Source: Pelomyxa schiedti (lineage: Eukaryota; Protista; Evosea). Taken from it: 64,000 nucleotides of DNA. The notes beneath the pieces were generated by a model. It did no database searches. It worked only from the letters and a program-made list of their open reading frames with translations, and was not told where the DNA came from. The stretch is taken from the NCBI GenBank assembly GCA_020536535.1, contig JAHLWZ010000872.1, forward strand, positions 1 to 64,000, given 5' to 3'. A program made the position numbers and the translations under genes. Shown here one piece after another: positions 962 to 64,000 of this stretch. The number at the start of each line of letters is the position of its first letter. Positions within the stretch are counted from its first letter, which is position 1.

Positions 962-3230
962 TTAAAAGGTTGAGTTCCTCCAAATGAGGGGATCATGGTC
1001 TCTCAACCACAAACGAGTGGCAAGAGGGAATTGGTAGTGTGGTGCACTGGAACAGAATGCCAGGATGTCATCCATGGTCAGTTGAGGGAACCTCTTCATG
1101 GCCACCTGTGCAATGACTGGTGACTTGCACACGAGTGGAAGGAAACTCTCTTTGACCATGCCTCCTATGAACCCTGGGAACACCTGTTGTATCATTTTCC
1201 ATGTGAACAAATCAATCCACATGAAGGAGTCCTTATCCCACTTGAAGTGAACAATCTGCAACAAAGGCTGTGAGGAATGAATCTGTGTTGTGCATAGGGA
1301 AACGGAAGTGAGAGAGGGTGTTGAGTACCTCATCAAGTGTGATGTGGAACTTGTTGATGAGCCACTCTGCACAGCTCCATTTACCCCCTGAAATCAATTT
1401 CAACAACATTCTGTTGTTGTGGTGGGCAATGTGTTGGTGTTCAAGCTGGAAGTGGTTGATGAGCCACTTGGCCGTTTTGGTGGATTCAATTCCGAATGAA
1501 TTGACCAGGCACCCGGCAACAGACTCTTTGGAGAACTCACCCATGGAAACGATCTTTACAATCTGTGAGAGGGTGCCATGTCGCACACCTTGCTTCAGGA
1601 TGCGTACAAGAAGTCGAGACCTCTTTGGTTCGGAGATGTGGAAGTGTTCCATCAGGAGGATTGCAGTGCTAGATGATGGATTGTTCCCCCAGGATTCAAT
1701 GCACTCCACAATCACCGATTCATCCACACCTTTCATTGAGGAGTGCTTCAGAAACCATTCCATTCCCTCTACTCTTGTGCAATGAATCTTAACCTTCTTG
1801 CACAACTTGACAAAAATGGAACAGGAGATCGTGAAAAGCTTGAGGCTGTTGGAGTTTGGGGGATTCAAAATGTGAAAGGTCTCATCCAACCACGATGCAA
1901 TTGAGGTGTGGTTGCAGGCCAACGAACTGATGAACGAATCGGAGATAACCTCTGGTGAAAGTGACGCCCTTGTTGATAACCACTTGGCAGTCTGCACGTT
2001 GTCTGTTGAGTTTCTGCAGGCTGATTGAAACATTGATGGTGTTGGTGTGAAAGACCGCTCCTCAACGAGCCACTTACAAAACTGAAAACCTTCTGCTCCT
2101 GAACAAAGCCTCTCCAGGTTTTCTTTTGTGGGAGTTGTGAATGAAGGGAATGCGGACATTGCCCACTTCAGAACAGCAAGATTGCAGATACAGATGAATG
2201 GAGGGTGAGGAGGAAAAGAAATTCGTTCGCTGATAACCTGGCACACTTCCACACTCTTGCTTGATTTTCCGCCAAAGCAATACCCAAATATTCTGTAAGA
2301 ACTCGTTTCACCCGCCACAGGAAATGTTTCCAGGCACCACTTCACAACTTCCAGGTTCTCACTCCGGCATGCTCCAGTGTGCAGATCCATCCAAGAACAA
2401 CCCCTCAACTTTGGAACCAAATCAAAGGTGTTCACCAACCACTGAGCCAACTCCAAGTGACCCCCCGTCACAGCGGCTGAAAGTGGCCCAGCAAACTCCC
2501 AAGTCTCCCTCACCACGAACCTCTCGACCACCCACTTTGCCACCTCCACGTGGCCCTTCTCACACACTCCCTTGAGCAGGTCAGAAGACCTCACGTGGTC
2601 ACCCAGACTGCTGTTGTCCACCACACACCCCCCATCGTCATCATCGTCATCCCACCACACCAAACCAAGACCTGCTGCCCAGTCACCACCACAACCACCA
2701 TCACCACGGTCAGGATCCACGAGGCACTGAGCCATCCCCAAGTGGCCACCAACACACAGCCCCTCCAGCACCCGCATAAACACCTTGTTCCCCCTCCTCC
2801 TCAGTCTCCTCCTAGTCTCTTCACCACCCTCGCCGCCACCAACACCATCGGCAGCGGCGGCACACGCTTGTTGTGGGCCCCCTCTCCTCCTGTTCCTCAG
2901 AAGCCAGCCCACGCACAGCCTGCTCCCGGCCTCCGCCGCGCACCTGGCGGCCATGCCCCAGTGCTCCAGCCAGGCCAGCATCGACGTGCACGCGCGCCCG
3001 ACGAGGGGGAACATGGCCTCCGCGACCCCGCACAGTTCCACGCAGTGCTCGAGGCCCACGTGCGCGTCGTCGCTGGGGTCGGGCGACACGACGAGGGACT
3101 CGGGGAGCAGCCAGGGGAGCACCCACTCCCACACGACCATCGACGTAGAAACTGCTCGCGAGACAGACGCCGCTCGGGGCAGCTGGAGGAGGGCCAACTC
3201 GCTCGCATCGTTGGTGCTGCTATGCGTCAT
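962..3230 (-). CDS. Ankyrin-like/alpha-helical repeat protein with degenerate N-terminal family motif; 2 exons (3230-1329, 1255-962)
   Basis: ATG at 3230 (MTHSST). Degenerate ankyrin-type units: LCVGGHLGMAQCLV, VCEKGHVEVAKWVV, AVTGGHLELAQWLV, ACRSENLEVVKWCL. A 73-nt GT..AG intron (1328-1256, phase 0) joins LDE|IVHFKW in frame with ORF 962..1372. Confidence 0.8.
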
Positions 3231-3291
3231 CTTCCGATTTCGGAGAAATCTGCTTCCCACAGTGTGATAACAAGTTGAATTCGGAATTTTG

Positions 3292-4650
3292 ATGACGGGC
3301 TGCACGTCTGCCACAGCAGCAGTGACGACGCGGAGCCAACTTGGAGCACTCGCGGCAGGGGCGACGATCAGTCGGTGCGGGGCCAACAGCGCCATGGTGG
3401 GAGCCATGGGCCACGGCCACGCGACCTCGTTCGTCCGCATGCTGTGGTCCGACTGGGTCCGTCCCACAATCCTGTTCTTCGTGGTCGACGTGAAGGGCTG
3501 CCCGAGCTGGGCCGCCACCAGCTGCGCCGGCCAAGCGGAGTCGACCACCACGGTGTCCTTTGCCCTCTCCCCGTTGCTCCTCAGCGTCGCCCTCGCCCCC
3601 GCGCCTCCCCCTGCGTGCATCGAGCCCACCGCGTTTAACACCAGGAGGGTCGACAGCGGCCGCGTCGCCGACGTGCGGTTTCATGGTGATCAGTATCTTC
3701 CCGTTGTGTGGGTAAGGGACGTGCACTCCTCTCGCCTCCCCGGAGGAGCAGGCGGGGTCGCGGTGGCCCGCGGGCGCTATGGGCGGCCCTATGCGTATGA
3801 TGTGAACTCCAAGTGGGCTGCCATGGTGTCATTTCCTACTTGCAAAAGAGGGGCTGACGCTGGGAAGGCGGAATTGACTGTTGCGTCATTGAGCAGGGCG
3901 AGATCTGTTGATGACCACACAGGCATGGAGTTCCTTTCCCACAGTGTTGTTGTGGAAATGCCATTTGTGGAATCCACTGGGCACAACCTCTGCCACATGT
4001 ACCTTGACAAGTCAGTCGACAGCGAGGTTATCGTGGTGCAGTGCATCCACGGGGAATACTCTGGGAACATAGCGGTGATATTCGTTGTGGACATGGAGCA
4101 GACATACAACACAAAGAGACTGACAGTTCTGAGCACCACCACGTTCAAATTCCCGGCGCACTACTTTAGATCCCTCGTTGTTCTGAGGAACTGGCTCCCT
4201 CGTTCCCCTGGTTATGGGTCACGCACATTCTTCGTGACCACGTTCCACAGAGATAGTCTCAGTTCTAGCCACCTTAAACCAAGCCACAATGAGGTGTTCC
4301 GCGTTGAGGAGTTGACAGGAAATTTCACGCACGTGATCTCCAACGTGATTGACGTGTTCAGAGTGTGTGACTCGCTGCTTGGTGTGTCATACAGATTAGA
4401 CGAAGAGCAGGAGTTGATCAAGTTCTATCACCGTGACGACCCAACACGACCTTTGCATCTTCCAGGGAGCATGAGTTACGAATCACACAAGGGCAAAACG
4501 ATCTCAGCAGGTTCGGGGTTCGTGTTCAGTGCGTTTATCAACTTGATTGATGTGTTTGATCCAACATCAGGGTTCCTCATCCTCACCATCACTCTCAGCA
4601 GCCGCGACAACATCGTGTGTGTCACACACTCCTCTTTCTTCTTGAACTGA
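3292..4650 (+). CDS. Family-A hypothetical protein, copy 2 (N-terminal RCG motif plus beta-rich C-terminal domain)
   Basis: Intronless ORF of about 452 aa, ATG 3292; paralogous to copies 1 and 3; GC-rich 5' half. Confidence 0.85.
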   Translation: MTGCTSATAAVTTRSQLGALAAGATISRCGANSAMVGAMGHGHATSFVRMLWSDWVRPTILFFVVDVKGCPSWAATSCAGQAESTTTVSFALSPLLLSVALAPAPPPACIEPTAFNTRRVDSGRVADVRFHGDQYLPVVWVRDVHSSRLPGGAGGVAVARGRYGRPYAYDVNSKWAAMVSFPTCKRGADAGKAELTVASLSRARSVDDHTGMEFLSHSVVVEMPFVESTGHNLCHMYLDKSVDSEVIVVQCIHGEYSGNIAVIFVVDMEQTYNTKRLTVLSTTTFKFPAHYFRSLVVLRNWLPRSPGYGSRTFFVTTFHRDSLSSSHLKPSHNEVFRVEELTGNFTHVISNVIDVFRVCDSLLGVSYRLDEEQELIKFYHRDDPTRPLHLPGSMSYESHKGKTISAGSGFVFSAFINLIDVFDPTSGFLILTITLSSRDNIVCVTHSSFFLN

Positions 4651-4742
4651 AAAAAAAAAGAACCGCGGATCTTCAAAGAAAAGGGAATGACTAGGAAATT
4701 GATTTCCAAGAACCAGTGCACTGGGCACCACGGAACTCGAAG

Positions 4743-6062
4743 ATGGACCAAGTGGCAGCAGTGGCAGCGGTGACGACGCGGAGCCAACTTGGAGCACTCG
4801 CGGCAGGGGCGACGATCAGTCGGTGCGGGGCCAACAGCGCCATGGTGGGAGTTATGGGTCACGGCCACGCGACCTCGTTCGTCCGCATGCTGTGGTTCGA
4901 CTGGCTCCGTCCCACAATTCGGTTCTTCGTGGTCGAAGTCTCCGACGACACCTCCATTTCCTTTGCCCTCTCGCCCCTGCTCCTCAGCGTCGCCCGCGCG
5001 CCGTCGCCGCCCCCGGCCCGCGCCTTCCCGACCCCAGGAGACTTATGGGTCGACATAAGCCGCGTTGCCGACGTCCGCTTCGGCGTTCTGAGGCTCAGGC
5101 ACGTGCAATCCGGCCGCGGAGGCGGCGTGGCCGTGGCACAGAGCCCCCCTCGGTGTACATTCGCGTACGGGGTGAATTCCAAGTGGGCTGCCATGTTGGC
5201 CGAGTCTGGCTTTGGGCATTCTTGTTGCGGCGCCACGTTGACTGTTGCGTCACTGGCTGGGCTTGAGTGTCAGCCTTCTGTCAATGACACAGGCTCGGAT
5301 TTCTTTGCCTACCGAGGGGGCGCTGGATGGCCACTTGTCAACAGCTTCGCTGTGGAAATACCATCTCTGCAGTCCCCTGGCCCCCGCCAGGTCCGGATGC
5401 ACCTGGACAAGTCAGTTGACAGGGAGGTTATCGTGGTGCAGCAAGCACAGAAGAATCATTACCAGAACATAGCGGTGATACTCGTCGTTGATATGGAGCA
5501 GACATACAACACGAAGAGCCTGGCAATTCTGAGCACCACAACGTGCACGTTCCCAGTGAGCTACTCCTTCGAATCTCTCGTTGTTCTGAGGAACTCGCTC
5601 CCTCGTTCCCCTGGTTATGGGTCCCGTTCATTCTTCGTGACCATCGTCCATACAGAAAGTGTCTATTCAAGCCACTCTCAGCCAAGCAACAATGAGGTGT
5701 TCCGCGTTGAGGAGTCGACAACAAATTTCACAAACATGCTCTCCAACGTGGCTCATGTGTTCAGAGTGTGTGACTCACTGCTCGGTGTGTCATACAACAT
5801 AAACAAAAAGCAGGAGTGTATCCAGTTCTATCACCGTGACGACCCAACACGACCTCTGAATCTTCCAGGGAGCATGATCTACGAATCACACAAGGGCAAA
5901 AAGGTGCGAACATTCTCAGCAGATTCGGGGTTCGTGTTCAGTGTGTTTGGCAACATGATTGATGTAATTGAGCCAACCTCAGGGTTCCTCGTCCTCACCA
6001 TCACATTCAGCAGCCTCGACAACATCGCGTGTGTCACGCACTTCTCGTTCTTCTTGAACTGA
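4743..6062 (+). CDS. Family-A hypothetical protein, copy 3
   Basis: Intronless ORF, first ATG 4743 (MDQVAA). N-terminal ~50 codons nearly identical to copy 2; C-terminus ends VTHFSFFLN like copies 1 and 2. Confidence 0.85.
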   Translation: MDQVAAVAAVTTRSQLGALAAGATISRCGANSAMVGVMGHGHATSFVRMLWFDWLRPTIRFFVVEVSDDTSISFALSPLLLSVARAPSPPPARAFPTPGDLWVDISRVADVRFGVLRLRHVQSGRGGGVAVAQSPPRCTFAYGVNSKWAAMLAESGFGHSCCGATLTVASLAGLECQPSVNDTGSDFFAYRGGAGWPLVNSFAVEIPSLQSPGPRQVRMHLDKSVDREVIVVQQAQKNHYQNIAVILVVDMEQTYNTKSLAILSTTTCTFPVSYSFESLVVLRNSLPRSPGYGSRSFFVTIVHTESVYSSHSQPSNNEVFRVEESTTNFTNMLSNVAHVFRVCDSLLGVSYNINKKQECIQFYHRDDPTRPLNLPGSMIYESHKGKKVRTFSADSGFVFSVFGNMIDVIEPTSGFLVLTITFSSLDNIACVTHFSFFLN

Positions 6063-6240
6063 AAAAAAACATGATGAGATCTTCCTGCGCTTCGGCGTTG
6101 ATTCTGTTTTCGAAAAAAGCAAAAGGGATAAAAACAACCCGAAGGTGCTGCGACTCAAAAATATCGTAGTGTTCGTGGGGGGCAAAGTCGAGGAGCAAAA
6201 TAAAACAACCAAACCAAGGCACGCACACACAGATCTGGGG

Positions 6241-9200
6241 ATGTGGGCGCAGTACTACGCGTCGGCGTACGGGTACGGGGCGCCGATGGGGGTGATGTCT
6301 GCGATGGTGCCGCAGGGGATGCACGGGGGCGTGGGGATGCAGGGGCACGTGGTGGGGCACGCGCAGACGGCGGCGATGATGTACCCGCAGCCGCCGCCGC
6401 CGCCGCAGCAGCACCCACAATCGGTTGTCGGGGCCTCCGCCGTGCAACAGCAACAGCAGCAGAACTACGGGGGGTTCGCCCCTGTGCGCCGCCAGATGGA
6501 TTACTTCGAAGACCCATCTATCATGGTTTGTATTATATATATATATATTTTATGTTGTTGGGCTGTTTGTTTGTTTGGTTTCTAGAAGGGTGTTTTTTTT
6601 TTAATGTTGGTTGGTTGCTGTTTTTCTTGTTTTCTTTCTTTGGCTTTTGTTTGTTTGTTTGTTTGTTTGTTTGTTTGTTTGTTTGTTTGTTTGTTTGTTT
6701 GTTTGTTTGTTTGTTTGTTTGTTTGTTTGTTTGTTTGTTTGTTTGTTTGTTTGTTTGTTTGTTTGTTTTGGCTATGTATTATCGTCATTCTGTTTGTAAA
6801 GAAAATGAAACAGAATCCATATGGTGAGCCGGAAAATGATGAAAACGGTAGTCTGAATGATGATGGAACTTATGCAAACGAAGAAGACTATTCTCTTCCT
6901 CAGCCCCAACTGTATGATGACTACCAATTCGCCGTCCCCCCTACACGGCCCTCGCCACCAGGGTCACCACCACTTTCACCTAACAGAGGCTATCCATACA
7001 CACCTTATCGCGCACATCAAAACGGGAACATCACTTCAAATCAACCACTTTCACCACAGCGAATTACCTCCCCCCCAACATCGCCGACCAGAGTGGGATC
7101 TCCCAATCCAACAACTGTAACAAGAGGAGCTTACCAATCACCTCAGCGGCTAGATTCGCCTAAATCCCCCAGCGCCAATTCTAAAACAGCAAGTCCTCTC
7201 TCCGCATCAATGAAATCTAAGTACCCAAATTGCAAATTTGACCAGAATCTAACTGAGTCGGACACCTGGACTGGTATCGACTTGAGGTTCCTCCACACAA
7301 CCAAACTCAGTTATCTAAAAAGTTGTGTAGTTCTTGTGGGCTCTATTCTTTGAGCAAATCAATTGCCAATTATGTACATTTGACAGCCCTTTTCCTCCAG
7401 AAGAATAACTTTTCATCACTTCCAGGTTCTTTTGTAAAAGCTTTATCACCCTTTCTCAAACCAACTTATCTAGAATGGGTCACTATGCTAACCAACTTGA
7501 CGCATTTAGACGTGTCACATAACCAGCTACAGGTTGTGACACCGCTAATCGATAGATTGCAGCACCTCACCCACCTCGACCTATCTCACAACAAATTGAA
7601 TGCACTTCCTCCTGAAGTTGGCCACCTGTTCAGGTATTTATGAATAACCAGTAGTAAGAATTCACAAGCTGCAATAGACTAAAAAAGTTTGATGTTTCGG
7701 ACAATCCCATGAATATCGTGCTGAGAGATACCTCCTTGTTTGTGCATTTCAGAGATAGACTTCCAGGTCATTTTTCAACCATGAATCTGTGTAATCTGAG
7801 ACGTTACAGCACCTCCCCCACCTCCCACAAGAGAATGGCTAGTTTCTGACAATATTATCAGAGAACCAAATAAAGAACTCGAGTCATTCACAGTAATGAG
7901 GCACCTTTCTCTAAAACGAAATTGTCCACAAGCTCAATTCTTCTCAGCTACAATATACTTGCTGATATGTATGCTTCTCCGGAAACGTACCGCTATTGTC
8001 CACCATGGGCACTTGATTGGAACAACCGGAAAAAACTAGTACTAGAGCAAATAAAAGCACTGTCCCCCGCAGTAATCTGTCTTCAAGTAAGCTGTTATGC
8101 AAACATTCCCTTTTCTAATATGTTTCCAGGAAGTAGAGACAAAACAATTCGTTGATTTCTTCCTTCCAAGTTTGACTGCGGTATCTCCCACAAAGAACGT
8201 CTCATAATATTGACTTTTTTACCAGATTGGCTACACTGGTGTTTTTAAACCTAAATCGAGAGCAAGACATGTTATAGAGAATTCCAAGGTCGATGGATGT
8301 TGTATATTTTTCCAAACAACAAAGTTGGCTCCCCAAGTCAATATGCTTATTTAACAATCAACCAGATTCTCTCTTGTCGACACGATTCTCATCGAGTTCC
8401 AGTCTCTCAGCATGACCCACTTCGGCAGCTGCTCTCCCACTACAGTGCCTTTAACACCGGATGTCTTTGAAAGAATTTTATCACGGGACAATATCGCTTT
8501 ATTAACTGTACTCAAAGTAACTCTCAGAAGGGATTTTTTTGGGTACTTATTTCTTTACTAGTCGAATAAAACTGGAAGACTTATAATTGTTTCCACAACT
8601 CACATTCACTGGTACCATTCGCTCTTTACTTGCAATTTTTTCACTGTCAATCTCAGGGACCCAAGCAGTAGTGATGTGAAACTCATTCAATCACAATTCC
8701 TGGTTGAAGAGATTGCATCTGTAAAGGCAAACATAGAAAAAGTTGTCTCTGCAAAGCAAATACAAGAGTCTAACCATCTCCACAGTCTGGTAACATGGAT
8801 GTCCCTGTCATTGTTGCAGGTGACTTCAATTCCACCCCAGTATCGGGTGTATATTCTTTCCTTCGAGATGGGCATCTTGCTCCAAGTAAGTGTCATACCT
8901 TTAAGTAGTTCCCACAGAGGCGTAAATAAGATCATCCTGACTTCAATGGATTTAAGTACGGTGACTATAGTATCAAGGGATTAACTCACAATCTCCAATT
9001 CGCTTCGGCTTACTCCAATTTCGGGGAACCTCCCTACACGAACTTTTCATCTGGTTTACAAACCCCTGAAAAAAACCTACTCCCGCACCTAACACCACCA
9101 CAGAATTCTCCGGCTGCATTGACTACATATGGCACACCACACCAAACACGGCTGTCACCAGCGTTCTTCCGGTTTTATCCAAGGAGGTAGTGTCACAGCA

Positions 9201-9495
9201 AAAGATACCCTTCCCGAATGCCGTGACACCATCGGACCACGTTTTCATTGCCGCGAACTTCTCCTGGCTGTCATCATCCCCCGGCACCACCGCTCCCAAT
9301 TCAACAGCACCCCCCAAACCCGTCACATCCACATCCGCTTCTACATCCACAAGCAACAGTAACAGCAGCAGTAATAGCGGCGGTACTGCCGCAGCACCAA
9401 CAACTACAGCAACTGCAACAAATTCCGATTCGACTTCCGAGAAGTCCTCTGGCACCGCACCTGCACCCGCACCAACGCCCTCATCATCGGAGTGA
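6241..9495 (+). CDS. CCR4: CCR4-NOT deadenylase subunit CCR4/CNOT6 (low-complexity N-terminus, LRR, EEP nuclease domain), multi-exon
   Basis: LRRs (LTHLDVSHNQL, LTHLDLSHNKLNALPPEVG) followed by EEP motifs SYNILADMYA, WALDWNNRK, ICLQ|EV, GDFNSTPVSGVYSFLRDGHL, CIDYIW and PSDH. Confidence 0.93.
6649..6768. repeat. (GTTT)30 microsatellite in the first CCR4 intron
   Basis: Direct count of perfect GTTT units. Confidence 0.95.
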
Positions 9496-9701
9496 GCACT
9501 CACTCTACTGTGAGTGAGCCTCCGCTTCCCGAAGCTGTGACTCTACGATGCCATCATTGTGGGCGTAACCTCCCCCCTTTGCTCAGCAGCTCACTATCAC
9601 CTGCTCCCACAATCCGCTGTGCCCGTGCCTGCCTCTTGTAAATTTTTGTCCTGATGGTAAAAAAGTTGCTCTTCATGGTTTGTGTACAAAAAAGAAAAAA
9701 A

Positions 9702-9801
9702 NNNNNNNNNNNNNNNNNNNNNNNNNNNNNNNNNNNNNNNNNNNNNNNNNNNNNNNNNNNNNNNNNNNNNNNNNNNNNNNNNNNNNNNNNNNNNNNNNNN
9801 N
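9702..9801. other. Assembly gap (100 N) flanked by the same 121-bp sequence (9581-9701 = 9802-9922)
   Basis: Direct sequence comparison. Confidence 0.95.
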
Positions 9802-9953
9802 GCTCAGCAGCTCACTATCACCTGCTCCCACAATCCGCTGTGCCCGTGCCTGCCTCTTGTAAATTTTTGTCCTGATGGTAAAAAAGTTGCTCTTCATGGT
9901 TTGTGTACAAAAAAGAAAAAAACATTTCTGTGAGCGATTTTTTCAGGCTAGGT

Positions 9954-11365: not shown

Positions 11366-11425
11366 GTTCGTGATGATGGGAAAAAATACAAAAGTGATGG
11401 TGCTGTTGGTTCAAAGAAAGTGCAT

Positions 11426-20559: not shown

Positions 20560-22480
20560 CTGACCCTTTTTCTCTTTGGAGCTTGCAAAGTCCATGTACC
20601 CACTTATCCAGGTGATGGGGTTCGTCACTCCTCACAAAAAATACCTGCAAAACAAAAAAAAAACATACACGCACTAACCTTGCGTACTTGTGGGAGACAA
20701 CAAAAAAAATGTTTTTTATGGGGGGAAGAAATCTCCGATGTGGTTGGGTTGGGGGTGACTGTTTGATGATATATTGGAGGTAGTGGGTGCGGTAGTATGT
20801 ATTGGATATTGGATTGGATTGTTGTTGTGAACTTGTTGTTGTATTCATATCATCATTCCGCAGAGTGCCATTGCATTCCAAATCATCCCATTCAATCAGA
20901 TATCTTATCTGTGCGTTGAAANNNNNNNNNNNNNNNNNNNNNNNNNNNNNNNNNNNNNNNNNNNNNNNNNNNNNNNNNNNNNNNNNNNNNNNNNNNNNNN
21001 NNNNNNNNNNNNNNNNNNNNNGCCCCATTGATTGCTTGCTCTTTGGGACAGCAGGCAGGGCAGGGATGCCATTCGGCTGTGCACCAAAGGTGGCACAAAT
21101 TTCTCGAGGTTGCTTAAAACCCCCTGCACACTGCCCCCATCATGATGACATGGTCACACCATGGGCCACACACTCTCATATCTGCGTGGGAATAATCAGT
21201 GTGCTGTAAATAGCAAGGGGCACACACACCTTACATGCTGCAATGGCAAAATCCCCCAAATCAGTAGGTAGTAACAAAGCCGGTGGTGTTGTTGATGGGG
21301 GGAAGAAATCTCCGATGTGGTTGGGTTGGGGGTGACTGTTTGATGATATATTGGAGGTAGTGGGTGCGGTAGTATGTATTGGATATTGGATTGGATATTG
21401 GATTGGATTGTTGTTGTGAACTTGTTGTTGTATTCATATCATCATTCCGCAGAGTGCCATTGCATTCCAAATCATCCCATTCAATCAGATATCTTATCTG
21501 TGCGTTGAAATGAGTGAAAGGTTTGGTAAAAAACGGCACACAGCTTTGTATAGAGAGCCTGCCTCATGTTGAATCATGCCCCATTGATTGCTTGCTCTTT
21601 GGGACAGCAGGCAGGGCAGGGATGCCATTCGGCTGTGCACCAAAGGTGGCACAAATTTCTCGAGGTTGCTTAAAACCCCCTGCACACTGCCCCCATCACC
21701 GTGACTCGAGCATAACAGAAGGAGTGTTGGTGACGAAGAGAAACAGACCACTGCCTTGTACCGCTGTGTTGTATTTATTGCCTTGTGTAGGCGAAAAACC
21801 GGCGGCGATTTGTGGTGTTTATTGTGTCGTACCTTTTTTTTATTTTTTATGCGAGCTTACGTTGTCGTACATCCGGCTGTTGTAGTGCGATTTTTTTTTA
21901 TTTTTGTTTAATAATTCTTAATTTTAATTTAGTTTTTTTTTAATTTTTTTTGTTTAATAAAAATTATTCCTGAAGCAGAATGGACAGCGTCTATTTTTAT
22001 ACTGCAACGACTTTGCAACTCGAGCCAAAACCATTTCTGAGTGTACATTTCTCCCCCACCTCGATAATGGGAGCAGAGAACACGGATTGTAGTTGGCCAA
22101 AGAGTTGTGGTGTTTTGGTGTGTTAGTGCTGTGATGTTAGCGTAATCGTTTATGTATTGTAGTCGACTACTGGACATTTCCCAACTCCCATGATTCGTCT
22201 ATGTTGTAATAGTAAGTTAGACCGACTGCGTGGGTATATAGCGGTATTACTATTTAAAAAAAACAAAGAAAGCAAGTGAGTGCCGGGTGTTTAGAACACT
22301 GCGTTTAGAACATACCTCAGTGTCAGAACGGAACAACTGTAATAACTGAGTGACTAAACAAATACGAGCGTCGCCGTGTGCAATGTGTGTCATTGGGCAT
22401 CTCGGTCGTCATACATTTCAAGAGTTTTCAAAATACACTGGGCTCTGGATTTTCGGTTACGGCAGCATAAACCCTGGAAA
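20560..22480 (-). CDS. Possible multi-exon hypothetical gene containing an internal tandem duplication
   Basis: GT-AG-bounded exons, e.g. SLYKA|IRYLIEW, and VFFVRSDEPHHLDKWVHGLCK, which resembles a PH-domain C-terminal helix. Boundaries are poorly defined and a gap interrupts the region. Confidence 0.3.
20717..21698. repeat. Tandem duplication, period about 560-590 bp (about 20717-21142 vs 21296-21698), spanning the 100-N gap at 20922-21021
   Basis: 20801-20921 and 21022-21142 each match the second copy exactly; the second copy has an extra 12-bp GGATTGGATATT unit. Confidence 0.85.
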
Positions 22481-52740: not shown

Positions 52741-53840
52741 TTACTCTGTGTGCTCATTTACATGGAGGATTTGGATTTTGGTTCGGGTTTTTTCTGCCTG
52801 ATTGTGTGCGTTTGTCACTTCACAGTTGGATGTGGTTAGTTCCAGGGAGGATATTGTTGGTATGGCTGTTTGTTGGACTAGGGTAAGGGTTGCCTGTGTG
52901 TCGAAAGTGCAGTCGCTAGTGTTGCACTTCACTGTGTGTTGTACTTGTATGTCCGTGTTACCAAGGACTGTTACTTGCACCTTGTGCGAATCGGCTGAAC
53001 ATTCCACCTTGCAGCCTGGTTTCTTGTTAAGTTTGATTTACGGAAGTGTGTTCTTTTACCTAGTTTCGAAGATAGAACTTCGGAGAACAAGGTCTGCATA
53101 GTTGGAGAGCAAGCTTCAAGAACGTAAGTGACTGGGGATCCTTTACCAATGGTATCTCTCAGTAGTCCGGCCACATGTGTCTCCATTGAACCACTAATGG
53201 CACCCATTAGGTGTGTGTTGACGGGAAACTTACTTACATAGATGGGCTCTCACGGATTTTTTGTATCAGGCACTTGGAGATATTGGGAAGGCCAAGTTTA
53301 TTTGCCAAAGAACACAAAGTAACGTAGGCAGCAATCCCCCCACATGCTAATAGAGTTTGGTTGGCAGCGTCATCACCTAGACAATACCTTGTTCAAAACG
53401 AAACTTTAATTGTAAGTAGTTTATATACCTACAATGGAGATGACCTTGGAGCTGAGAGCACGAGCAATTCTCTTAGTTTCTTCCTTATCTATGCTTATTT
53501 TGCAGTGCAGTTCCCTGGGGAAGAAAGTAAGAATGTGTACCCCACAGCATTACAAAGTTAAACTTTGTCTTTAATTTAAAAGTAACTTAACATTAAGGAA
53601 AAACCCACATTGACAACTCAACAACAATAATTCGCAAAACGCGTACTTTGCGGCGGCCAACGGCGGGAGTCTCCTCGGCGCCGGCTTTTTGCAGTACATA
53701 AAATAAATGGTGACGAACAGCACGATCCACATCACCCCGGCGACCGCCGCTGTCCCCCGCCGGTCGACCTCCACCCCGACCCCCGCGTCCCCGTCGCCCG
53801 CGCCGTCGTACCCCGCCCCATCCCCCCCCACCGCCATCAT
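52741..53840 (-). CDS. Hypothetical single-pass membrane protein, multi-exon
   Basis: GC-rich first exon MMAVGGDG... with TM segment AVAGVMWIVLFVTIYFMYC followed by basic KKPAPRR; several open GT-AG exons downstream. Confidence 0.45.
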
Positions 53841-54016: not shown

Positions 54017-55501
54017 TTAATCAAAATGAGGAAGGAAGGAGAAGTGGCGTGTGGTTCGGCACAGAGGCCTGAATAACTTGAAGGTGATGACGTGGTCACC
54101 AGAGCACTCTTCACTCACATGTATTTCTTTGTGTGATTCGCTCATCTGGAACATGAATCCACCATCAGCAAAAGACTCAGTGGTGGTGAACCCAGGCTGT
54201 AACTTGCATTCCCTCACTGGTTTGGCTGGGTCATTGATATCCCACACGTTGTAGCCATAGCTTCCTTCAAAAACACAGAACTGTGACATTCTCAGTTGTG
54301 AAACCACTTCTGGGAATCTTAACATTTTGTATCTCTTGTGGCCGATTGGGTTCACTTTCCCAGTTGCATCGTCAATGGAAATGAGATCTCCAACTTCGGA
54401 CATGGTGACAAATTTGATGGCACCACTCTTTGTGGAACAGGCAACACAGTCATTGGTCAGGAAATCGTCGCATTCAAGGTAATCTAACGATGTACCTTTC
54501 ATAGAAGTGGGGGAGGCAACAGCTGAGGCCACGGCCACCAGTTTTCCTGATGACTTTGTTTGTGCGAGGTCGATCAGAATGAATTGCACACGAGTAGGGC
54601 TGCCAAAGGAATCAGAGAAGCGAACCAACAGGTGGTCTTCATTGAAACTGCAAAAGGAATGTGTCAACACATTCCATTTTTTCTCAACAGAGGAAATTGG
54701 AACCACTGTTGCTGGTTTTTCTTTTGCTGTGCTTGGCTCTCCCCTCTTTGGCAGCTCAATGACAAACAATGAGTCTGTCGAAAAGCACACAAACCACTTC
54801 CCATTTGTGCCCTCTGTGCCAGAGGACTTGTTGATGGAAAACAGAGGTTCAAGGTGCCCAGTCTCTCTGCCCTTCAAGTAATAAACCCCTCCTCTTGCGT
54901 ATTCCCTCCCCACCAACTGGTGCTCATTTGCCCCCAACACTTGTTCACCCGCCCACCACTTCAATTCATGAGTGAGTGTCAACAACACCGAGGAGACACC
55001 AAACGTGATCACCACACCGTACTTCTTGCAACGCCAACACACGCAGAAGAGCCTCTCAGTTCCCATCAACCACTTCCACAGCAGCCTGAGCACCAGAGTG
55101 CCGTCACAACAACAACAACAACAAGAACCACAACCACCGCCAGCAGCAGCAGCAGCAGCACTAGTGGTCATCATCGATGGTGCGGTCATCGACCACAGCA
55201 ACAAAGGCGAGAGCGAGGAGCGGGAGCCACAGCGGGGGTGCGATGCCATGGCCAGCGACATCATCTGGTCCGCCATCGTGTGTGGCTGGTATGTCGTCGT
55301 GGTTGTTGTCACTGTGGTTGTTCCTCTTCGTTTTGTCCTTGTTGTTGTTTGGTTTGTGGACAATGGGGCGACGGTGACCACTGTGCCGATACCGAATTGT
55401 GGGTTGTGGCGACGCTGCTGTTGGGGGTTGTCGAGTGACGTCGGTTGCAGTGGATAAGAATCGTCATGTGGGTTTTCCTGTTGTTGCCGCCGATCGTCCA
55501 T
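54017..55501 (-). CDS. N-terminal-motif superfamily member (beta-rich C-terminal domain), intronless
   Basis: ATG 55501 (MDDRRQ); ADQMMSLAMASHPRCGSRSS ... RLLWKWL ... ITFGVSSVLLTL; C-terminal IHVSEECSGDHVITF parallels family-A IDVFDPTSGFLILTI. Confidence 0.85.
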   Translation of the reverse strand: MDDRRQQQENPHDDSYPLQPTSLDNPQQQRRHNPQFGIGTVVTVAPLSTNQTTTRTKRRGTTTVTTTTTTYQPHTMADQMMSLAMASHPRCGSRSSLSPLLLWSMTAPSMMTTSAAAAAAGGGCGSCCCCCCDGTLVLRLLWKWLMGTERLFCVCWRCKKYGVVITFGVSSVLLTLTHELKWWAGEQVLGANEHQLVGREYARGGVYYLKGRETGHLEPLFSINKSSGTEGTNGKWFVCFSTDSLFVIELPKRGEPSTAKEKPATVVPISSVEKKWNVLTHSFCSFNEDHLLVRFSDSFGSPTRVQFILIDLAQTKSSGKLVAVASAVASPTSMKGTSLDYLECDDFLTNDCVACSTKSGAIKFVTMSEVGDLISIDDATGKVNPIGHKRYKMLRFPEVVSQLRMSQFCVFEGSYGYNVWDINDPAKPVRECKLQPGFTTTESFADGGFMFQMSESHKEIHVSEECSGDHVITFKLFRPLCRTTRHFSFLPHFD

Positions 55502-56031
55502 TGGGCCTAGGATTGATCCCTTGAGGGAAATGGTTCTGGGAAGATCAAAGTGATGGTTTGTTGAGCTCAATCCTTGGTCTAAAAAGCGAGCACTGCAGAG
55601 TTGAGACTGGATTCTACCCACAAAACCAGAGGGGTTCCGGAACAAACAACAAGGATTTTTTCCGTTGGGTGGAATCTGGGGACTTGATCAGATGCCCAAA
55701 AACGGCTAGAGGAAAGCCCAGAGAATTGCCTTTGTGGGCAACCGGATCATCAAGCCCAGATTCCAAAGCCTGGAAAAAGGGGAGAACGAAAAGCGGAGCT
55801 GGGCGACTTTTTATTGGTTTCTCTGACAGTGAGCAATTTGTTCGTTACTCGAACGGCAAACTGGCTGCCTTTATAAACAAGCCTTTTGTCGTGGTAACTC
55901 AAAATATAATATAAAAAAGTGAGCTTTAAAACCCAACAAACAAACAGCCAAACCAAACCAATACCGGCACAGCAGCCAGCACAAACAAGCAACAGCAAAA
56001 CAACAAACCAAAAACAACCTATAAAATACAA

Positions 56032-58896
56032 ATGACAATCACAAACCTGGTTACAGTGGTGGTGGCGTTCTGTTTGTTCGGAATGACATCAGCAAGGTTC
56101 GGGACACAGCTGCCCACAGCATCAATAACAGTGGACACCAACCTGCAGGCAATTGGAAACACTTGGGGTGTTACCTCCAATACTTCTGCTGACTCGTATG
56201 CTGTCCTTCTCATCTTTCTGACTTGTTTATCATGCGTTGATCAATGCACAGGGGGTTCTTCCCAGTGAAAATGGTTGACAGCAGCCTTCCCGACGGGATT
56301 GCATACTTCCAGTCATCAGCCGGAGACAGTTCGGCTGTTTGCCGCCTTACAATTGACTTGCTCATTGAGAGGAACATCACATCAATGCTGCTTTTCCCGA
56401 TGGGTGCCACTCCTACATCATATTCTATGGCCGGTGCTGACGCTTCTGCTGTGGTCGGGCCTATTACTTACCCTGTTGAACTCCTCCCTGGTATGTAGTT
56501 GAGCCGTTTTTCGTTGGTTGATTGACTTGTTCTAATGCAATACACAGAGTGGACAAGCGGAAGTATGGCCAGCATAACGACGCCTGTTGAAGTGTTTGTG
56601 AACCGGAAGGTCAGGTATCTGACGGTCAGCTTGCAAAAGCCTGTATCGGAGTTGATGTTTTATATGGGAAGAATGCACTTTTACAGTATGTTTGTTGCTC
56701 GCTCTTTCATCATGGTCAATAACCGATGACAGCTTGTGCGCCGTGTGATTATGAATACATGATGAACCCCTCAACTTGCGCCTGCACACTATGTGAGCGG
56801 AAAATTAAAAAAAACAAATGCATTACTAATACCACCGCAGTGCCGCAGTGTGACAGATATGTTCACCCGATGGAAGTAAACGAATGGAGCACATCTATTA
56901 TTGGAGGTGGAAGCGGATTCTTAGCTCCAGATACTCTCACAGTCACGTTCTCGAAGCCGATCGTGAATGGCGAAGGTCCCATTTCAATCCTTCCTGCTGG
57001 AGGTAATGTGTCACGCAACTCAATTTCATTAGATTATATCTAATTAATTAATTAATGCAGAAACGAACGTTGGATGTGGGTGCCCTTCAAGTGCTTGTTC
57101 AATGGTTGTGTCTGGGTGTAACATGGTTTACACATACACGGTCAACTGGCAGTATTTCCTCAACAACTGCGGCGTACAATTGCTTCCATCGGATTCCTCT
57201 GTTTTATATTACCGGACTGTTTTCAACTGTATGTTGTCACCCCTTCACTTTTATGCTCACTTTGCACAGATAACTTTGATACCTTGGTTGTCAATTCCTC
57301 TGTGGTTCAATCAACGAGCGAATACACGCCCCTCTATGTATGTTGTGAGTTGTGTGCTTGGAGCGGGACACTAAAACTATCCAGATCGCCATTCCAACTG
57401 TGATCGACTTGACGCTTGTACAAATAAATCTTGTGGATCCATATGTCCCAACGGTTGTCACTGGTTATGTGAGTGGCCACTTAATTTCAATCTCCAGCTT
57501 GATTTCTAAACAAATATCCATAGGTTACTGTGAAGAAAATCATTGACAGGAAACTGCACCTCGAGTTCTATACTACAACATTGAGCCCATACAATCTCAA
57601 TGTCCTAAGGCTCGAACCAAATGTGAAATTCTTCAACCAGACTTTCACAGTATGTCTTCCCTCCCTCACATGGAAGTCGCTCTAACGAGGACTATCTCGC
57701 AGCATGTGAGCACCAGCTGCTCATTGACAGATGTTACATGTTATCAGTACTGGCAGATTGACAGTTACCTTGCTCCGGATGTCTGTATCTTCCAAGGAGA
57801 GCCTATTTTGATCCCCTTCCAATTCACTTGCCTCGATGGAGCTTCCTGTTCATACCTGGTCGGCGGTGTTGACAAGCAGAACGGCACCTTCTCGGTTCCC
57901 ATGTGGTCTTCGGATCTCTGTGGGTCAATTCAGGTACCTGAATTATCATTTTCTTAATAAAATTGCTTTGAATTGGCATCGCATACCTTGGCTTTTTTCC
58001 CGGAGATAAATCGATGCATGTCCTCCCATAAATACTCACTCAACTTCTCATCTAGTTGAACGCCACTCTGACTGGAACGTTTGACATGTTCAGTGACAGC
58101 GCATGCTCTGTTCCGAGCAAATCTTTCAAGCTTGTTCCTCCTACAACTGCATACCTTTTGGTAATTTCCTTCTCTCATGTTCCGGCTGTTGAATTCTCCT
58201 TACCTGTAATAAGATTGACTTGACTTCATCAGTTTCGATCAACACAGCCACTCTTGTAAACTTCTATGTGTTCGTGAATGGCACACTCAACGCAGTCATG
58301 TACGCTACATTTTTATGCACCTCCAAGTTCCAACTTACCCATTTTTTCAGATTCAACAAAGCCGTTCAAGCACTTGCAACAACAGCTCACTTCGTAGAGA
58401 CCACTCCATATGACTCTGATGTCACTAAAATGCTCATGGCAATCGAGTTCAACACCAACTGGTTGTCAATTGGTATGCGATTCATTTCATCCTCCTTCCT
58501 CTCTCTCTCTTTTCCCCCTCCCTCCACAATTCAATTCAATTGCTTTGATGTGACTCACTTTCAACTGCAGACATGGGCGAGGTCGCGGACATCAAGTTCC
58601 AGGCGGATCTCAGCGTGACTTACAAGAGCTCAGCCAAGAGCCCAATGTTGCCTCGCGGGGTCGCTACTCGCGCGGACGACTACCCCGAGAGCGTGACGGT
58701 GCTCCAGGCAGGCCTGGTGACCAGGGACCCCGCAGCCGCGGCGTCTGCGTCGTCGTCGTCGTCGCACGGCGCGGCCTCGTCGCAGTCAAACGCGCACTCG
58801 GCCATCATCTCGCCCCACACCTCGGGCGCGTCCCATGCCTACGCTGCTTCCCTTGCCGCCCTCGCGGCCCTCGCTCTTGTGTCTGCTGTTGTATAA
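56032..58896 (+). CDS. Secreted, probably GPI-anchored Cys-rich surface protein, paralogue 1 (multi-exon)
   Basis: Signal peptide MTITNLVTVVVAFCLFGMTSA; exon-by-exon similarity to 59681..62484; Ser/Ala spacer and hydrophobic C-terminus (AYAASLAALAALALVSAVV*). Confidence 0.85.
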
Positions 58897-59052
58897 TTGC
58901 AAAATTATGTGAACATTTCCTTTGTTTGAAAGTGATGCGGGCAGACCCTTAAGCCTCAAAAACCAGGCTCCACACTGACCACATCATTCTGTTAGTCTTG
59001 GGAGTAGACGGGGAGTGACAGATGCGTTTGTACTTGAAGCTGGATAAGTTGG

Positions 59053-59660
59053 CTACGGCCAGTTTGGGGAGGAGGGTCGCGGTGTCGTGGTTGTGTTGGG
59101 AGTTTCTTTTGTGTTGGTCACATTCTGGGTGTGTGTTAGGGTAAACAGAACTCGGCCTGTCTCAACATCCTGGAAATTCTGCCTCACAGTGTGAACTCCA
59201 CCACTGGTGAAGGCAACAAAGCCCAAGGAAGGATACAGTGCGACTACATTTGTTTGCTGGTACAGGGGCTCACTCAAGTTTGAGGTGCAGTACACATCAT
59301 AACAGCCCTTGCTTGTTCGTGCAAGTAAGTGTGATGGCTGAGACAACCCCAAGATTGAGTATTTTGGGTATGGGAATAGTACTGTCGCACTTGGCACGTT
59401 GCCGTGTACAACACGCTGCAACGTAGTGCCACTTTTCCTACCATAGAGAAGGAGGAATTCATAATTGGACAACCAAAAGGAATCACAGGCTGTTCCCTCC
59501 TTATCTCGCTACAAACGTGTTCGTCCCTCCCCGTCAGGGACACCACTCACAGTTTCAATAAGGTTCAGCGGGCATTGCACCCACGACTGCACTGCAATTT
59601 GTCTCTGGAGTCGCCGCCGTGAAACGATAAAGCCCAATCCTGAGAAGTAAAAATCGGTTC
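59053..59660 (-). pseudogene. 5'-truncated relic of a motif-superfamily gene with an in-frame TAG (59509-59511)
   Basis: Frame reads WVQCPLNLIETVSG...RL*RDKEG...FQDVETGRVLFTL, matching family C-terminal segments (LIDLAQTKSSG; DV.EP.SG.L.LTI); no room for an N-terminus before the neighbouring stop at 59681. Confidence 0.55.
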
Positions 59661-59680
59661 TTGGTTTATACACACGTGTT

Positions 59681-62484
59681 TTACAGATGACATAATGAAA
59701 CAGCCACTAACAAAACAATACTCACAAACCACACAGGGTATACCATGGCAGCCACAGACGATTGCATTACTGAGGGTGATGTTGTTTGGGAATTGTATGC
59801 AGGTTCTAGTGAAGAAGCGTGGGAGGAGTACGAAGCCTGGTCATCAGCACTCCAGGATACAACACTGTGAGCCACAACACTGAGGCTGCGTGGGTAGTTC
59901 TCAATATCGTCATGGTGCCTCAGGCTGTTGGTGTTCCCCTGTCTGGCTGTTGTTTCCTTGTATTCCACAGTCAAATCAGCCTGGAATTTGATGTCCGCAC
60001 TTTGTCCCATCTCTGTTTTTGTATAAGTTAGAACTATTTGGAAATGCAAATGGGAGCACCTAGAGAGAGCCAATCTGTGTTGAATTGCAGAGAGAGGTGC
60101 ATTTTCGTTGCATCAGAGTAATAGGGTGTTGTTTGTTGGAACAGGGAAGTTACGGCTGCAGGTTGTGATACCATGTCAAATCTTTTCAGGTACAAATTTA
60201 GCATTAATTTCCATTAATTTTCAGCTTACATGAGAGCATGGAGACTGTCATTGACAAATACAAAGAAGTTTATCAAGTTTATGTGGTCTATAGAAGTGGA
60301 CGATGTCAGGTCTATCTGTACAATAGTGAGTGGCTAGGAAGTGAGTTAGGTTTCATGTCAATTAATACCAACGATATAGCATATGTCGGAGGAACGAGGC
60401 TAAATGACGTGCTTGGTTTGGAGCAGTCACTGTCACTGAACATGTCAAATGTTCCGGTCAGAGTTGCATTCACCTGGAAGAAAAGCGGTGAGATTTAAAG
60501 AGGAATTCTTCAAGTACTTGTACTGTTCCACAAAGGTCGCCTGACCACAGAGGGATCGAAAAAGTTCCGTTTTGTTTGTCAACATCACCAACCATGTACG
60601 AACAGTAGGCTCCGGTGAGGCAACTAAACTGGAAGGGAACCAAAAGTGGTTCTCCTTGGAATATACAAACATCTTTGCAGAGATTTAAAAATAACGAAAA
60701 CTAATTTCGGAAAAAGAAACCGGCGGAAAGGTAGCTGTCAATATGCCAGTACTCATAGCATGTTGTATCGAACACTGTGCAGGGTGTTCCCACGTGCTGT
60801 ATGTATATACAATTAATTTAGGATTTGATTTTCACATATTTACCGTCAGTGTTTGATTGAAAAACATATGGCTGGGCTCGATTACATAGAGGAAGATGTC
60901 ATATGGGCTTAATGTGGCCGTATAGAACTCAAGATGGAGCTTCCTGTCAACTATTCTTTTGACTGTGACCTGACAGTAGTATTATTTCACCTCAAGATAA
61001 TATAGGAGAGAACGTACATATCCAGCAACTGCAGTTGGGACGTAAGGATCGATCAGGTTTATTTGAACAAGCATCACATCTATCACCGTCGGAATAGCAA
61101 TCTAAGGTGTTCGTCAACTGCTTCTCTTTCTTTTAATAGTATACATATAAGGGAGTAGCTTCTATTGTCGCTTGCACAACTGAGGAATTAACGATATAGG
61201 TATCAAAGTTATCTGTGCACAGTAAACCATAGTGCGGGAATTGGTTGTTACAGTTGAAAATGACTTTGTAGTATAAAACAGCCGAATCAGACATGAGACC
61301 ATGGGCGCCACAGTTGTTCACGAAATATTGCCAATTGACAGTGTAAGAATAAATAATGTCACAACCAGAAACTGTCATCGTACATGCGCTTGATGGGCAC
61401 CCACAACCAACGTTTGTCTCTGTGGTTTAGTTATGGTGGATTTAATATTTTTAAAACAAATTACCTCCCCTTGACAGAATTGAGATAGGGCCCTCTCCAT
61501 TAACGATAGGTTTGGAAAAGGTTACTGTTAGAGTGTCCGGAGCAAAGAACCCACTTTGAGAAGCCACAATGGAAGCACTCCACTGATTAACTTCCATTGG
61601 GTACACATACCGGTCACACTGTGGCACTGATACAGATGTAAGAAATTGTTTATAATTTTGCAGTACTTACAAGGTATACATTTACAGGTGGCGGAGTTCA
61701 TCATATACTCATAATTGCACGGGGGACAAGCTAATATTTTAAGTTGAAAGTTGACTATAAAAGTAGCCAAATACTGTAAAAATGAATTCTCCCCATGTAA
61801 AAGCTCATTTCCAATGCAGGTTTTTGTAGACTGACCGTCATATGTCTTATTTTCCGGTTCACAAACACCTCAATTGGTGTGGTGATATTTGAATTACTTC
61901 CGTTCGTCCATTCTGCCATTTGATTGAGTGAGGAAGTATATACAGTTAAAAGTAGTAATATTACCAGGGAGCGCAGAAAGTGTGTATCCAGTCATTCCAT
62001 TGACAGCAGTTGCATTTACTTCAACTATGGAATAAGAGCCAGGAACTTTCCCCATTGGGAAAAACAGCACGGATGTGATGTTCCTCTCAGTTAGCAAGTC
62101 AATGGACAGCTGACAAATCTCCTTTGGGTCATCTCCCGACGCCATGAAATAGGAGAGACCATCAGGAACACTTGAGTTCAGCATTTTCTCAGGCCAGTAG
62201 TCTCTCCTATTTCATAATAGGAAAGGAGTTACCATCAGACCATATTATTATTGGCAATTAGAATTCTAAAGTTCAATCCAAATAAACAAACACACGCACG
62301 AGTCAGCGGGGACATTCGATGTTACACCCCAAGTGTCACCGATTGCCTGCGCGCCAGTGCTCACTGTTATCGACGCCATGGGCAGCTGTGTCCCAAACGG
62401 GGCAGATAGCACACCCACCAAACAACAACAACCCACAACAAACACAACTGAAACACCATCAGTCACTGATGACGCCATCGCCAT
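59681..62484 (-). CDS. Secreted, probably GPI-anchored Cys-rich surface protein, paralogue 2 (inverted relative to paralogue 1)
   Basis: Shared blocks FGTQLP.ASITV, SS.PDG..YF, C.L.IDLL.ERNITS, ACPPC.YEYMMN, YTVNWQYF.NNCG, ADIKFQADL.V.YK; hydrophobic C-terminus VWFVSIVLLVAVSLCHL*. Confidence 0.85.
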
Positions 62485-62835
62485 CACAACTCCTTTCGTT
62501 TATGCTTTTTGGTTTGAGTATTAGGTGCTCGATGTGCATTTTTTGAGCTGGAGGCCTAACCCCCTTTTTATGCCAATCGTTTTTCGCTTCTGAAGCTGTT
62601 CGTGGAATTGATGATCCAATACAGCCAGTTCTGGAAGAGGGAGCATGACCTTGTGATTGTGGGGGAAGCACTCATTCCTGGGAAGATCCACATTGCGAGT
62701 TTCTCTTGGCCTAACTGGTCCGTTTCGATCTCAGTTCAGAAATTTTTGTGACTTGGCAGCAGTGACTCACCAACCGACCCAATCAAATGACATACCCCCC
62801 AAAAAACACAACAAACATCAACAAATTGTCATAAA

Positions 62836-64000
62836 ATGCTTGCCCGAAGACGATATCAGTGTGAGCCTCTGCCGTCGTCGTCACCTCTGTTCGAGGTCGT
62901 GCGTGTCATCGACGCCCGAGCCCAGTTCTGCGCCCTCAGCCTCGCCTCCGTTGTTCCCCGCTGCGGGTGCCACAGCCCCGCCCACGTCTTGCCACCGTGG
63001 GTCTCGCAGGCCCTGCTCGGCCGGCCCTGGTTGATGTGCCCCTGCAGGCAGGTGTGCCTCGAAGTCGTCACGAGACTGAGGGACTCTGGGGGCTGGAGAG
63101 ACCCAAAAAAAGGCAGGAGGCGGCGCAGGGCCCGGCTGCCTTGGGGCGGCCGCATGGGCAGCGATCCCGACAGACTCACTTATGGGTTCTTGATGGTGTT
63201 TGGAATCGGGGTGTCACACACTGGTGGTGTGGCTTCATTGGAGTCAATTGTGCTCAACAATGTGAGTANNNNNNNNNNNNNNNNNNNNNNNNNNNNNNNN
63301 NNNNNNNNNNNNNNNNNNNNNNNNNNNNNNNNNNNNNNNNNNNNNNNNNNNNNNNNNNNNNNNNNNNNGGCCGCATGGGCAGCGATCCCGACAGACTCAC
63401 TTATGGGTTCTTGATGGTGTTTGGAATCGGGGTGTCACACACTGGTGGTGTGGCTTCATTGGAGTCAATTGTGCTCAACAATGTGAGTAATTGCTGCTGT
63501 TCCACTTGGAATACTGTGTTGGATGAAGGGAGGTGCTGGGAGTCTGACCAGGCTGATGTCACTAAGAACAAGGATGGATGCAGGCCAATTGGCTGGATAG
63601 GGAGAACGAGTGCTATCTTGAGGAGGTACAGGGATAATGCTCTTCTCGTGTATGACACTCGTGATCGTGAGGTGTTGTCAATTCACCACTGCATTCATAA
63701 AAGTGGCAACTTTTTACTTTGTAATGACCACTGGATGGTTGCAGTAAATGAGAGGAAGAAGTGCTTGGAAATTTGGAAAATCAAAGGAGGGAAACCGCTG
63801 GAGCCCGGTGTTCTTGTACCACTAAAAGAAGACCTCCTTGAGTGCGGCAGTTACTTCCACCGACAGTGGAAGTTTACTTCAATACTGCAGTCACAAGTCC
63901 CTCCTGGAGCTGAAGTATCAGTGATGTACATGAGGACTGAAATGCTCTCCTGGGCCTGGGCCTTTGAACAAATTGATATCTCGAAGTGTTATTCAGAGGC
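62836..64000 (+). CDS. N-terminal-motif superfamily member (runs off the window; crosses the gap at 63269-63368)
   Basis: VIDARAQFCALSLASVVPRCGCHSPAHVLPP ... VFGIGVSHTGG. Collapsing the duplicated 121 bp around the gap gives an uninterrupted frame to 64000 (..LNNVSNCCCSTW..CNDHWMV..). Confidence 0.8.
63269..63368. other. Assembly gap (100 N) flanked by the same 121-bp sequence (63148-63268 = 63369-63489)
   Basis: Direct sequence comparison. Confidence 0.95.

Follow-up and report, generated by a model that had tools for sequence, protein, structure and literature searches.

An almost wholly intronless, Pelomyxa-specific gene family predicted to encode beta-propellers behind a conserved N-terminal helical module

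The first 64,000 nucleotides of contig C872 (64,569 bp) of the Pelomyxa schiedti assembly (52.4 Mb in 5,337 scaffolds), hereafter the window, hold several uninterrupted genes whose products begin in the same way and continue differently. What is this shared N-terminus, what kind of body does it precede, and does the pair amount to an adaptor joined to a binding domain? We followed these questions through four genes, named A to D here, a truncated fifth locus (copy 1) and a neighbouring ankyrin-repeat gene, E.

To establish the motif independently of the window, we built a hidden Markov model (HMM) from the N-terminal 90 residues of 54 paralogs lying outside it, and ran this leave-out model on the 935 six-frame open reading frames (ORFs) of the window. 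It recovered gene A (3292-4650, plus strand; E 7.7e-33), gene B (4743-6062, plus strand; 1.3e-32), gene C (54017-55501, minus strand; 9.4e-23) and, weakly, gene D (first piece 62836-63268, plus strand; 0.002). After D came only a low-complexity chance match, and gene E was absent. Across 52 aligned modules an R, a C and a G are invariant, while a Q, an A and a W are nearly so. The leave-out matches and the invariant R-C-G together indicate that the N-terminal motif first noticed in the genes at 3292, 4743, 55501 and 62836 is real, and that these four genes form one coherent group. The helical module that carries it lies at 3325-3471 in A (plus strand; TTRSQLGALAAGATISRCG...LWSDWVRPT) and at 4773-4919 in B (plus strand; residues 20-68, numbering from 4716, with R-C-G at 4821-4829); the N-terminal module of C, with the first blade strands of the body included, spans 54965-55300 (minus strand), and D has a divergent R-C-G module at 62905-63066. 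The open frames of A, B and C run to 453, 448 and 542 residues. Copy 1 (2-736, plus strand), cut off by the contig start, retains the C-terminal 244 residues (approximately blades 4-7 of the body described below); it matches the full-length family HMM at positions 221-445 with an E-value of 1.9e-69 and is 62% identical to B. The HMM E-values of A and C were 3.5e-127 and 1.3e-126. Copy 1, A and B belong to subfamily I, and C to subfamily II (ADQ..HPRCG type).

The window samples a far larger family. Six-frame searches of the genome gave lower bounds of 109 matches for B, 110 for C and 125 for the 87-residue N-terminus of B. The N-terminal profile gave 1,304 first-look candidates, and all 150 of its scored matches were significant (worst 6e-16). 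Nearly all genomic matches lie in stop-free frames of 400-585 residues, and stops are few among the more than 200 matches seen. The uninterrupted frames remarked on in the first-pass annotation are therefore borne out as intact, against an average of 7.43 introns per gene in a genome with 19,876 predicted proteins (PMC8887013). Looking beyond the genome, we searched 1.84 billion representative proteins exhaustively with a profile and obtained 444 clusters at E<=1e-3, 173 of them at E<=1e-30; ten clusters sampled across the best 150 of the 444 were all from P. schiedti. A word search of 5.8 billion proteins with gene B likewise yielded P. schiedti hypothetical proteins as its only relatives. 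With at least 444 clusters set against 19,876 proteins (PMC8887013), the family would make up about 2% of the predicted P. schiedti proteins. It goes unmentioned in the genome paper (PMC8887013), and we found no description of it in the literature on the motif and on Pelomyxa family expansions. That A, B, C, D and copy 1 belong to a Pelomyxa-specific, almost wholly intronless multigene family with hundreds of copies is well supported.

We modelled protein B with AlphaFold2, using an alignment of 57 paralogs. The model (mean predicted local distance difference test score, pLDDT, of 81; predicted template modelling score, pTM, of 0.82) begins with a strand (residues 13-17) and three helices (21-33, 42-47 and 51-67), which are followed by 27 strands between residues 69 and 446. 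Counted together with the 27 later strands, the first makes 28, which gives seven four-stranded blades. VIA-align matched the model with Z-scores of 15-16 over 270-300 residues to the Vps11 WD40, coronin, prolyl-oligopeptidase and MADH propellers, and Foldseek (E 1e-8) returned only generic seven-bladed propellers, DPP4 among them. In both strand number and likeness to known structures, the predicted body is thus a seven-bladed beta-propeller, although no one propeller family came foremost in the fold searches, and F-box-WD40 proteins were absent from the top 50. At the sequence level, no Pfam family, WD40 and Kelch repeats included, matched A, B, D or copy 1 at E<=1, and C had a chance-level match only. 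Kyte-Doolittle profiles of 57 proteins exceeded 1.6 over a 19-residue window in 31, and in six of the 57 a hydrophobic stretch falls within residues 1-35; the top-scoring stretches that we compared with the model fall within predicted propeller strands.

How the helices relate to the propeller bears directly on what they might do. From the strand count and from structural alignments spanning residues 10-448, the helical piece appears to be an insertion in the first blade. Two further motifs picked out by the first-pass annotation take their place in the same model: SFALSPLLLSV / TFGVSSVLLTL is indeed conserved, but as the predicted strands 79-97 of blade 1, and DV.EP.SG.L.LTI is conserved as strands 414-431 of blade 7, so that neither would be a separate module. 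The notion that one N-terminus is fitted to interchangeable C-terminal scaffolds finds no support, since the module was seen solely before one and the same propeller. The full-length profile retrieved 153 family proteins, and in these the helical module (H) stood directly before the propeller (P) every time, in a plain H-P order in 78; H-P-H-P and similar orders are fused neighbouring gene models, and whatever else long models contain comes from adjacent genes of other kinds (Sel1, RING/Sina, kinase, RhoGEF, ankyrin). When only the N-terminal region served as query in a word-based search, just five proteins came up, all of them Pelomyxa propeller proteins, and none had a different scaffold.

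Conservation is distributed very unevenly along these proteins. In subfamily I the mean column identity is 0.71 in the helical module, 0.48 in blade 1, 0.24-0.32 over residues 98-235 and 0.40-0.55 beyond, which makes the helical piece the most conserved part and blades 2-3 the most variable. In close paralog pairs the ratio of nonsynonymous to synonymous divergence (dN/dS) of the propeller is 0.37-0.89. The earlier picture of a large, fast-evolving and lineage-specific family with a conserved N-terminus and a variable body therefore holds, with at least 444 clusters, Pelomyxa as the source of every one sampled, and a propeller dN/dS of roughly 0.4-0.9. A conserved front, a variable body and mosaicism are a pattern typical of recognition repertoires. 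The family is also intronless, in a genome that ranks among the richest in introns known from protists.

The mosaicism is seen between A and B, which are tandem duplicates about 90 bp apart; neighbouring copies stem from tandem duplication. Their synonymous divergence (dS) is 0.08 in the module and 0.46 in the propeller. Nucleotide and third-position identities are 82-94% over codons 1-60, about 50-60% over codons 91-210 and 80-87% over codons 240-420. Across codons ~91-210 third positions are near random. At four-fold degenerate sites encoding the same amino acid, 59% differ in aligned codons 86-131 vs 22% elsewhere, and the maximum chi-squared value at four-fold sites was matched by only two of 300 permutations. 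This contrast, together with the maximum chi-squared result, points to segment exchange or gene conversion. The same statistic was not significant for the pair of C and the member at locus L032 (57 of 300 permutations).

An ankyrin-repeat gene, E (Pelo_13164; 965-3230, minus strand; main ORF 1236-3230), stands head to head with A, 61 bp away. Its Pfam Ank_4 match scores 26.2 bits vs a cut-off of 22.7, and its paralogs carry Ank_2 and Ank_4. The family that it represents is a separate one, again confined to Pelomyxa; its paralogs occupy at least 70 loci in the genome (708 first-look candidates), and the close matches of E are from Pelomyxa only. This family has a conserved N-terminus of its own, SRvVWDWVLPWL ... 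AEAMFPLVGRAC. The gene at 3230 had been read as a degenerate copy of the propeller-family motif, which we could not uphold: the N-terminal HMM misses it, and the R-C-G part is absent. When we compared the profile of the R-C-G module with that of the E family, hhalign aligned 15 columns ('VRlLWdWv.P' with 'SRvVWdWVlP') at a probability of 8% and a score of 22.7. None of 140 column-shuffled controls reached this score (mean 11.0, maximum 19.2), so the likeness of the two W-x-W helices exceeds chance. We considered placing the propeller and ankyrin genes in one superfamily and rejected it, because the HMM misses E and the alignment is confined to 15 columns at that low probability, without R-C-G. 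Members of the two families are at times neighbours, as in the window. Three deposited models (P0017, P0024, P0099) appear to fuse one propeller-family and one ankyrin-family member, but only ~6 of the ~52 ankyrin contigs also bear listed subfamily-II genes. The ankyrin family is almost intronless as well; E has a 73-nt GT..AG intron at 1256-1328, supported by RNA contigs at 1070-2375 that join position 1255 to 1329 on the minus strand.

Taking the conservation pattern alone as our guide, we tentatively postulate that the variable propeller face binds ligands while the constant helical hairpin docks on one shared partner, which would make the family a diversified binding repertoire. The propeller face would recognise diverse ligands, and the hairpin, perhaps with the W-x-W helix, would tether every member to one common partner or site; the family would then work like the substrate-receptor families, yet outside the F-box, SOCS and BTB types. 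Should the constant module dock on a shared partner, it would be a new adaptor domain and would offer an inroad into target recognition by an anaerobic amoeba with obligate prokaryotic symbionts. Should it not, the family would still be a striking case of lineage-specific gene birth. Several points weigh against the docking proposal. The module passes straight into the first blade and may be merely structural. The N-terminal part of the B model is only moderately confident (pLDDT 50-80), and where the helices sit relative to the propeller was deduced from secondary structure and alignment ranges. A dN/dS of ~0.6 equally fits relaxed constraint. Lastly, the lower dS of the module shows that homogenisation at the DNA level contributes to its conservation.

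In the main rival, possible in our view though the less probable of the two, the helical piece is a structural cap or blade-1 insertion kept constant by the demands of folding and by gene conversion at the 5' end, with all function residing in the propeller. Its structural side draws on the strand count, which reaches seven four-stranded blades only if strand 13-17, before the helices, is included, and on the several structural alignments that cover model residues 10-448; moreover, the module is never seen without the propeller. Its genetic side draws on the synonymous divergence of the module, which is below that of the propeller, and on the GC gradient inside family genes (loci L001-L059), whose opening quarter has 65% GC and whose closing quarter has 48%, next to flanks at a genome-typical ~45%. 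A cap maintained for folding sits less easily with where the constancy is found. The invariant R-C-G corresponds to residues 36-38 of B, in the loop between helices 1 and 2 where pLDDT falls below 50, and not in a packed core. Between the helices, the loop accepts insertions that vary widely in length, yet the helices on either side are kept. Finally, a W-x-W helix much like that of the module stands at the head of the ankyrin family, which is unrelated.

The docking proposal can be carried further, into territory that we regard as doubtful. The R-C-G hairpin and the W-x-W helix, which also occurs in the equally expanded ankyrin family, would together be a new docking module that plugs hundreds of variable propeller and ankyrin binders into one machine, for example a ligase or a surveillance system for the obligate endosymbionts. 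Blades 2-3 would be a hypervariable cassette produced as paralogs exchange segments, and the outcome would be an innate-immune-like receptor repertoire in a protist.

Is the module instead a known adaptor that has diverged beyond easy recognition? It had been proposed to be F-box- or SOCS-like, and the architecture invites the comparison: a small helical N-terminus, a propeller and a lineage-specific expansion recall the F-box-WD40 and F-box-Kelch families, and the genome has at least five Skp1-like loci (C76:42663, C911:41378, C832:64983, C165:46471, C1244:9564), all intron-split. On such a view the module would be an F-box, SOCS or BC-box that has diverged strongly but still recruits Skp1 or Elongin C, and the family would be cullin-RING ligase substrate receptors. 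None of the 52 N-terminal modules, however, matched a Pfam F-box, SOCS or BTB model at E<=10, and the full-length proteins gave nothing relevant in Pfam. Neither the full-length nor the N-terminal alignment found anything in PDB profile searches beyond a chance match to VEGF-B (E 0.38). An F-box typically shows LP.E..I and V.K.W, and the alignment of the module lacks this pattern. We also folded the module alone (a short model, pLDDT 69). Its best matches were at E 0.8 in Foldseek and Z 3.7 in VIA, and no F-box, SOCS, VHL or BTB chain was among the best 50 in either search with this short, moderately confident model; the full model gave no such fold among its top 50. With neither a Pfam match at E<=10 nor a SOCS or VHL chain in the fold searches, the SOCS/BC-box/VHL class finds no counterpart here, and for BTB/POZ the helical part is also too short (~48 residues vs 95-120), again without a Pfam or fold match. 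An ESM Atlas feature search with the module produced no usable match.

Two structural matches might seem to speak for an adaptor. Among ten rows of an ESM Atlas search there is a single plant cluster combining an F-box with a propeller, at a template modelling (TM) score of 0.51, no better than the bacterial propellers around it (0.50-0.54), and the viral structure library returned mimivirus BTB-WD proteins at TM <=0.46. Both reflect the propeller part. Ordinary F-boxes are moreover readily recognised in the same genome, with at least 147 PF12937 loci (405 candidates), none of them at a listed family locus; P. schiedti thus already owns a large ordinary repertoire of Skp1-cullin-F-box (SCF) receptors. 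By sequence the module is not an F-box, and the fold evidence is negative too, though weak. An F-box, SOCS or BTB identity accordingly finds no match in the Pfam, PDB profile and fold searches, and we think it highly unlikely that a disguised member of these classes accounts for the family.

Least probable of all is that the genes are selfish or foreign, as cargo of mobile elements or of giant-virus origin, which would explain their intronlessness in an intron-rich genome, their high copy number, with many copies on short contigs, and their higher GC (coding GC 56%, GC at third codon positions 64%, vs flanks at ~45%), but the members are only 20-45% identical to one another with frames intact, their neighbours are ordinary intron-bearing genes, no transposase, integrase or reverse-transcriptase partner was seen, the flanks have no shared promoter or other motif and no regular poly(A) tail, the viral structure matches are generic WD propellers at TM <0.5, and the 1.84 billion proteins yielded no relative from outside Pelomyxa (ten checked from the best 150 listed). 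Retroposition, earlier suggested as the means of spread, fares no better: an A10+ tract occurs within 200 nt past the stop codon in only six of 50 genes, and A and B lie in tandem. An A9 run directly 3' of the stop codon of A (4651-4659) is, given those six of 50, no family-wide mark of retroposition.

Known systems offer partial parallels to a propeller family of this kind. Proteins that combine an F-box with a propeller (Fbw7/Cdc4; plant F-box-Kelch proteins and the b-prop_At3g26010-like domain, PF24750) share the short helical N-terminus and the seven-bladed propeller, and in the large lineage-specific expansions also the conserved front and variable body; the TM score of 0.51 is to the plant cluster. 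The Pelomyxa family differs from them in having no F-box signal in sequence or fold, helices apparently within the first blade with no linker, and intronless genes. CUL4-DDB1 receptors of the DCAF type, such as DDB2, have a helix-loop-helix before a WD40 propeller. They resemble our family in the helix-loop-helix immediately before a seven-bladed propeller, but the Pelomyxa proteins have no Pfam-detectable WD40 repeats. Mimivirus BTB/POZ and WD-repeat proteins (for example R739; Foldseek TM 0.46) likewise join a small N-terminal domain to a propeller, and they too form large families of paralogs, in a genome associated with amoebae; the Pelomyxa module is a helix-loop-helix of ~50 residues vs the ~100-residue BTB fold, with no sequence similarity. 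Parallels in evolutionary behaviour are the nematode F-box and MATH-BTB families and the plant F-box families, which are expanded, fast-evolving and diversified by recombination (PMC8665587, PMC3719486). Like the propeller family, they comprise hundreds of tandem-clustered copies in which a constant end, an adaptor there and a putative one in Pelomyxa, is joined to a variable end for binding, whereas the Pelomyxa family is so far confined to a single species and is not known to be linked to ubiquitination.

Gene D calls for separate treatment, because an assembly gap interrupts it. On both sides of its 100-N gap (63269-63368) stands the same 121-bp sequence, letter for letter (63148-63268 is identical to 63369-63489), so that 63269-63489 is an assembly artefact. 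The duplicate begins exactly at a codon boundary of D, which argues that the gene is continuous: residues 1-104 are followed by 373 more, up to a stop codon that ends at contig position 64490. With the duplicate discounted, the continuation (63490-64000 in the window, plus strand) is in frame. This part is beta-rich and ends in ...LLQVTDIFGARPSQPLLQITL. We searched the two pieces separately and never joined them. The module of D is weak and divergent (0.002 with the 90-residue N-terminal HMM, 2.7e-6 with a helical-module HMM, and up to 1e-9 in BLASTP against family N-termini). For its body, homology to the family propeller was not demonstrable (hhalign probability 1.2%), and the weak motifs are co-linear.

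A second 100-N gap, at 9702-9801, is likewise bordered by an exact 121-bp duplicate; both are overlapping contig ends that the scaffolder left unmerged. The gap at 20922-21021 has no such flanking duplicate and overlaps no family gene. Genes that span duplicate-flanked gaps in this assembly may seem broken though they are intact. Neighbouring family members are run together in many deposited gene models. Many of those of 800-1150 residues (P0031, P0032, P0063, P0072, P0074 and others) are two or three adjacent family genes fused, and in others a family gene is joined to a neighbour of another kind (Sel1, RING/Sina, kinase, RhoGEF or ankyrin).

Of transcription we have a glimpse from two shallow single-cell RNA-seq runs. 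Gene B had no coverage in them. Gene A is matched exactly by a 517-nt contig (4116-4632) preceded by the letters ACGCAGAGTACATGG, which we take to be the end of the template-switching oligo; on that assumption the contig is complementary DNA, and A is probably transcribed, although some DNA carry-over may have occurred in these shallow runs.

The window had been credited with up to 8 loci. We count five of the family (copy 1, A, B, C and D) and one ankyrin gene, and no coding relics. The sole additional tblastn match, at 53518-53712 (minus strand), was rejected as a relic: it resembles the non-propeller tail of model P0109, contains stops, and lies 300-500 nt downstream of C, where it probably represents conserved 3' flanking DNA and does not code for protein. 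The helical module of C itself contains a Cys/Gly-rich loop, for example GGGCGSCCCCCCDG. Such loops, of widely differing lengths, lie between the R-C-G turn and the W-x-W helix in subfamily II (C and members at L037, L045 and L056), where metal binding or lipid attachment might be conceivable.

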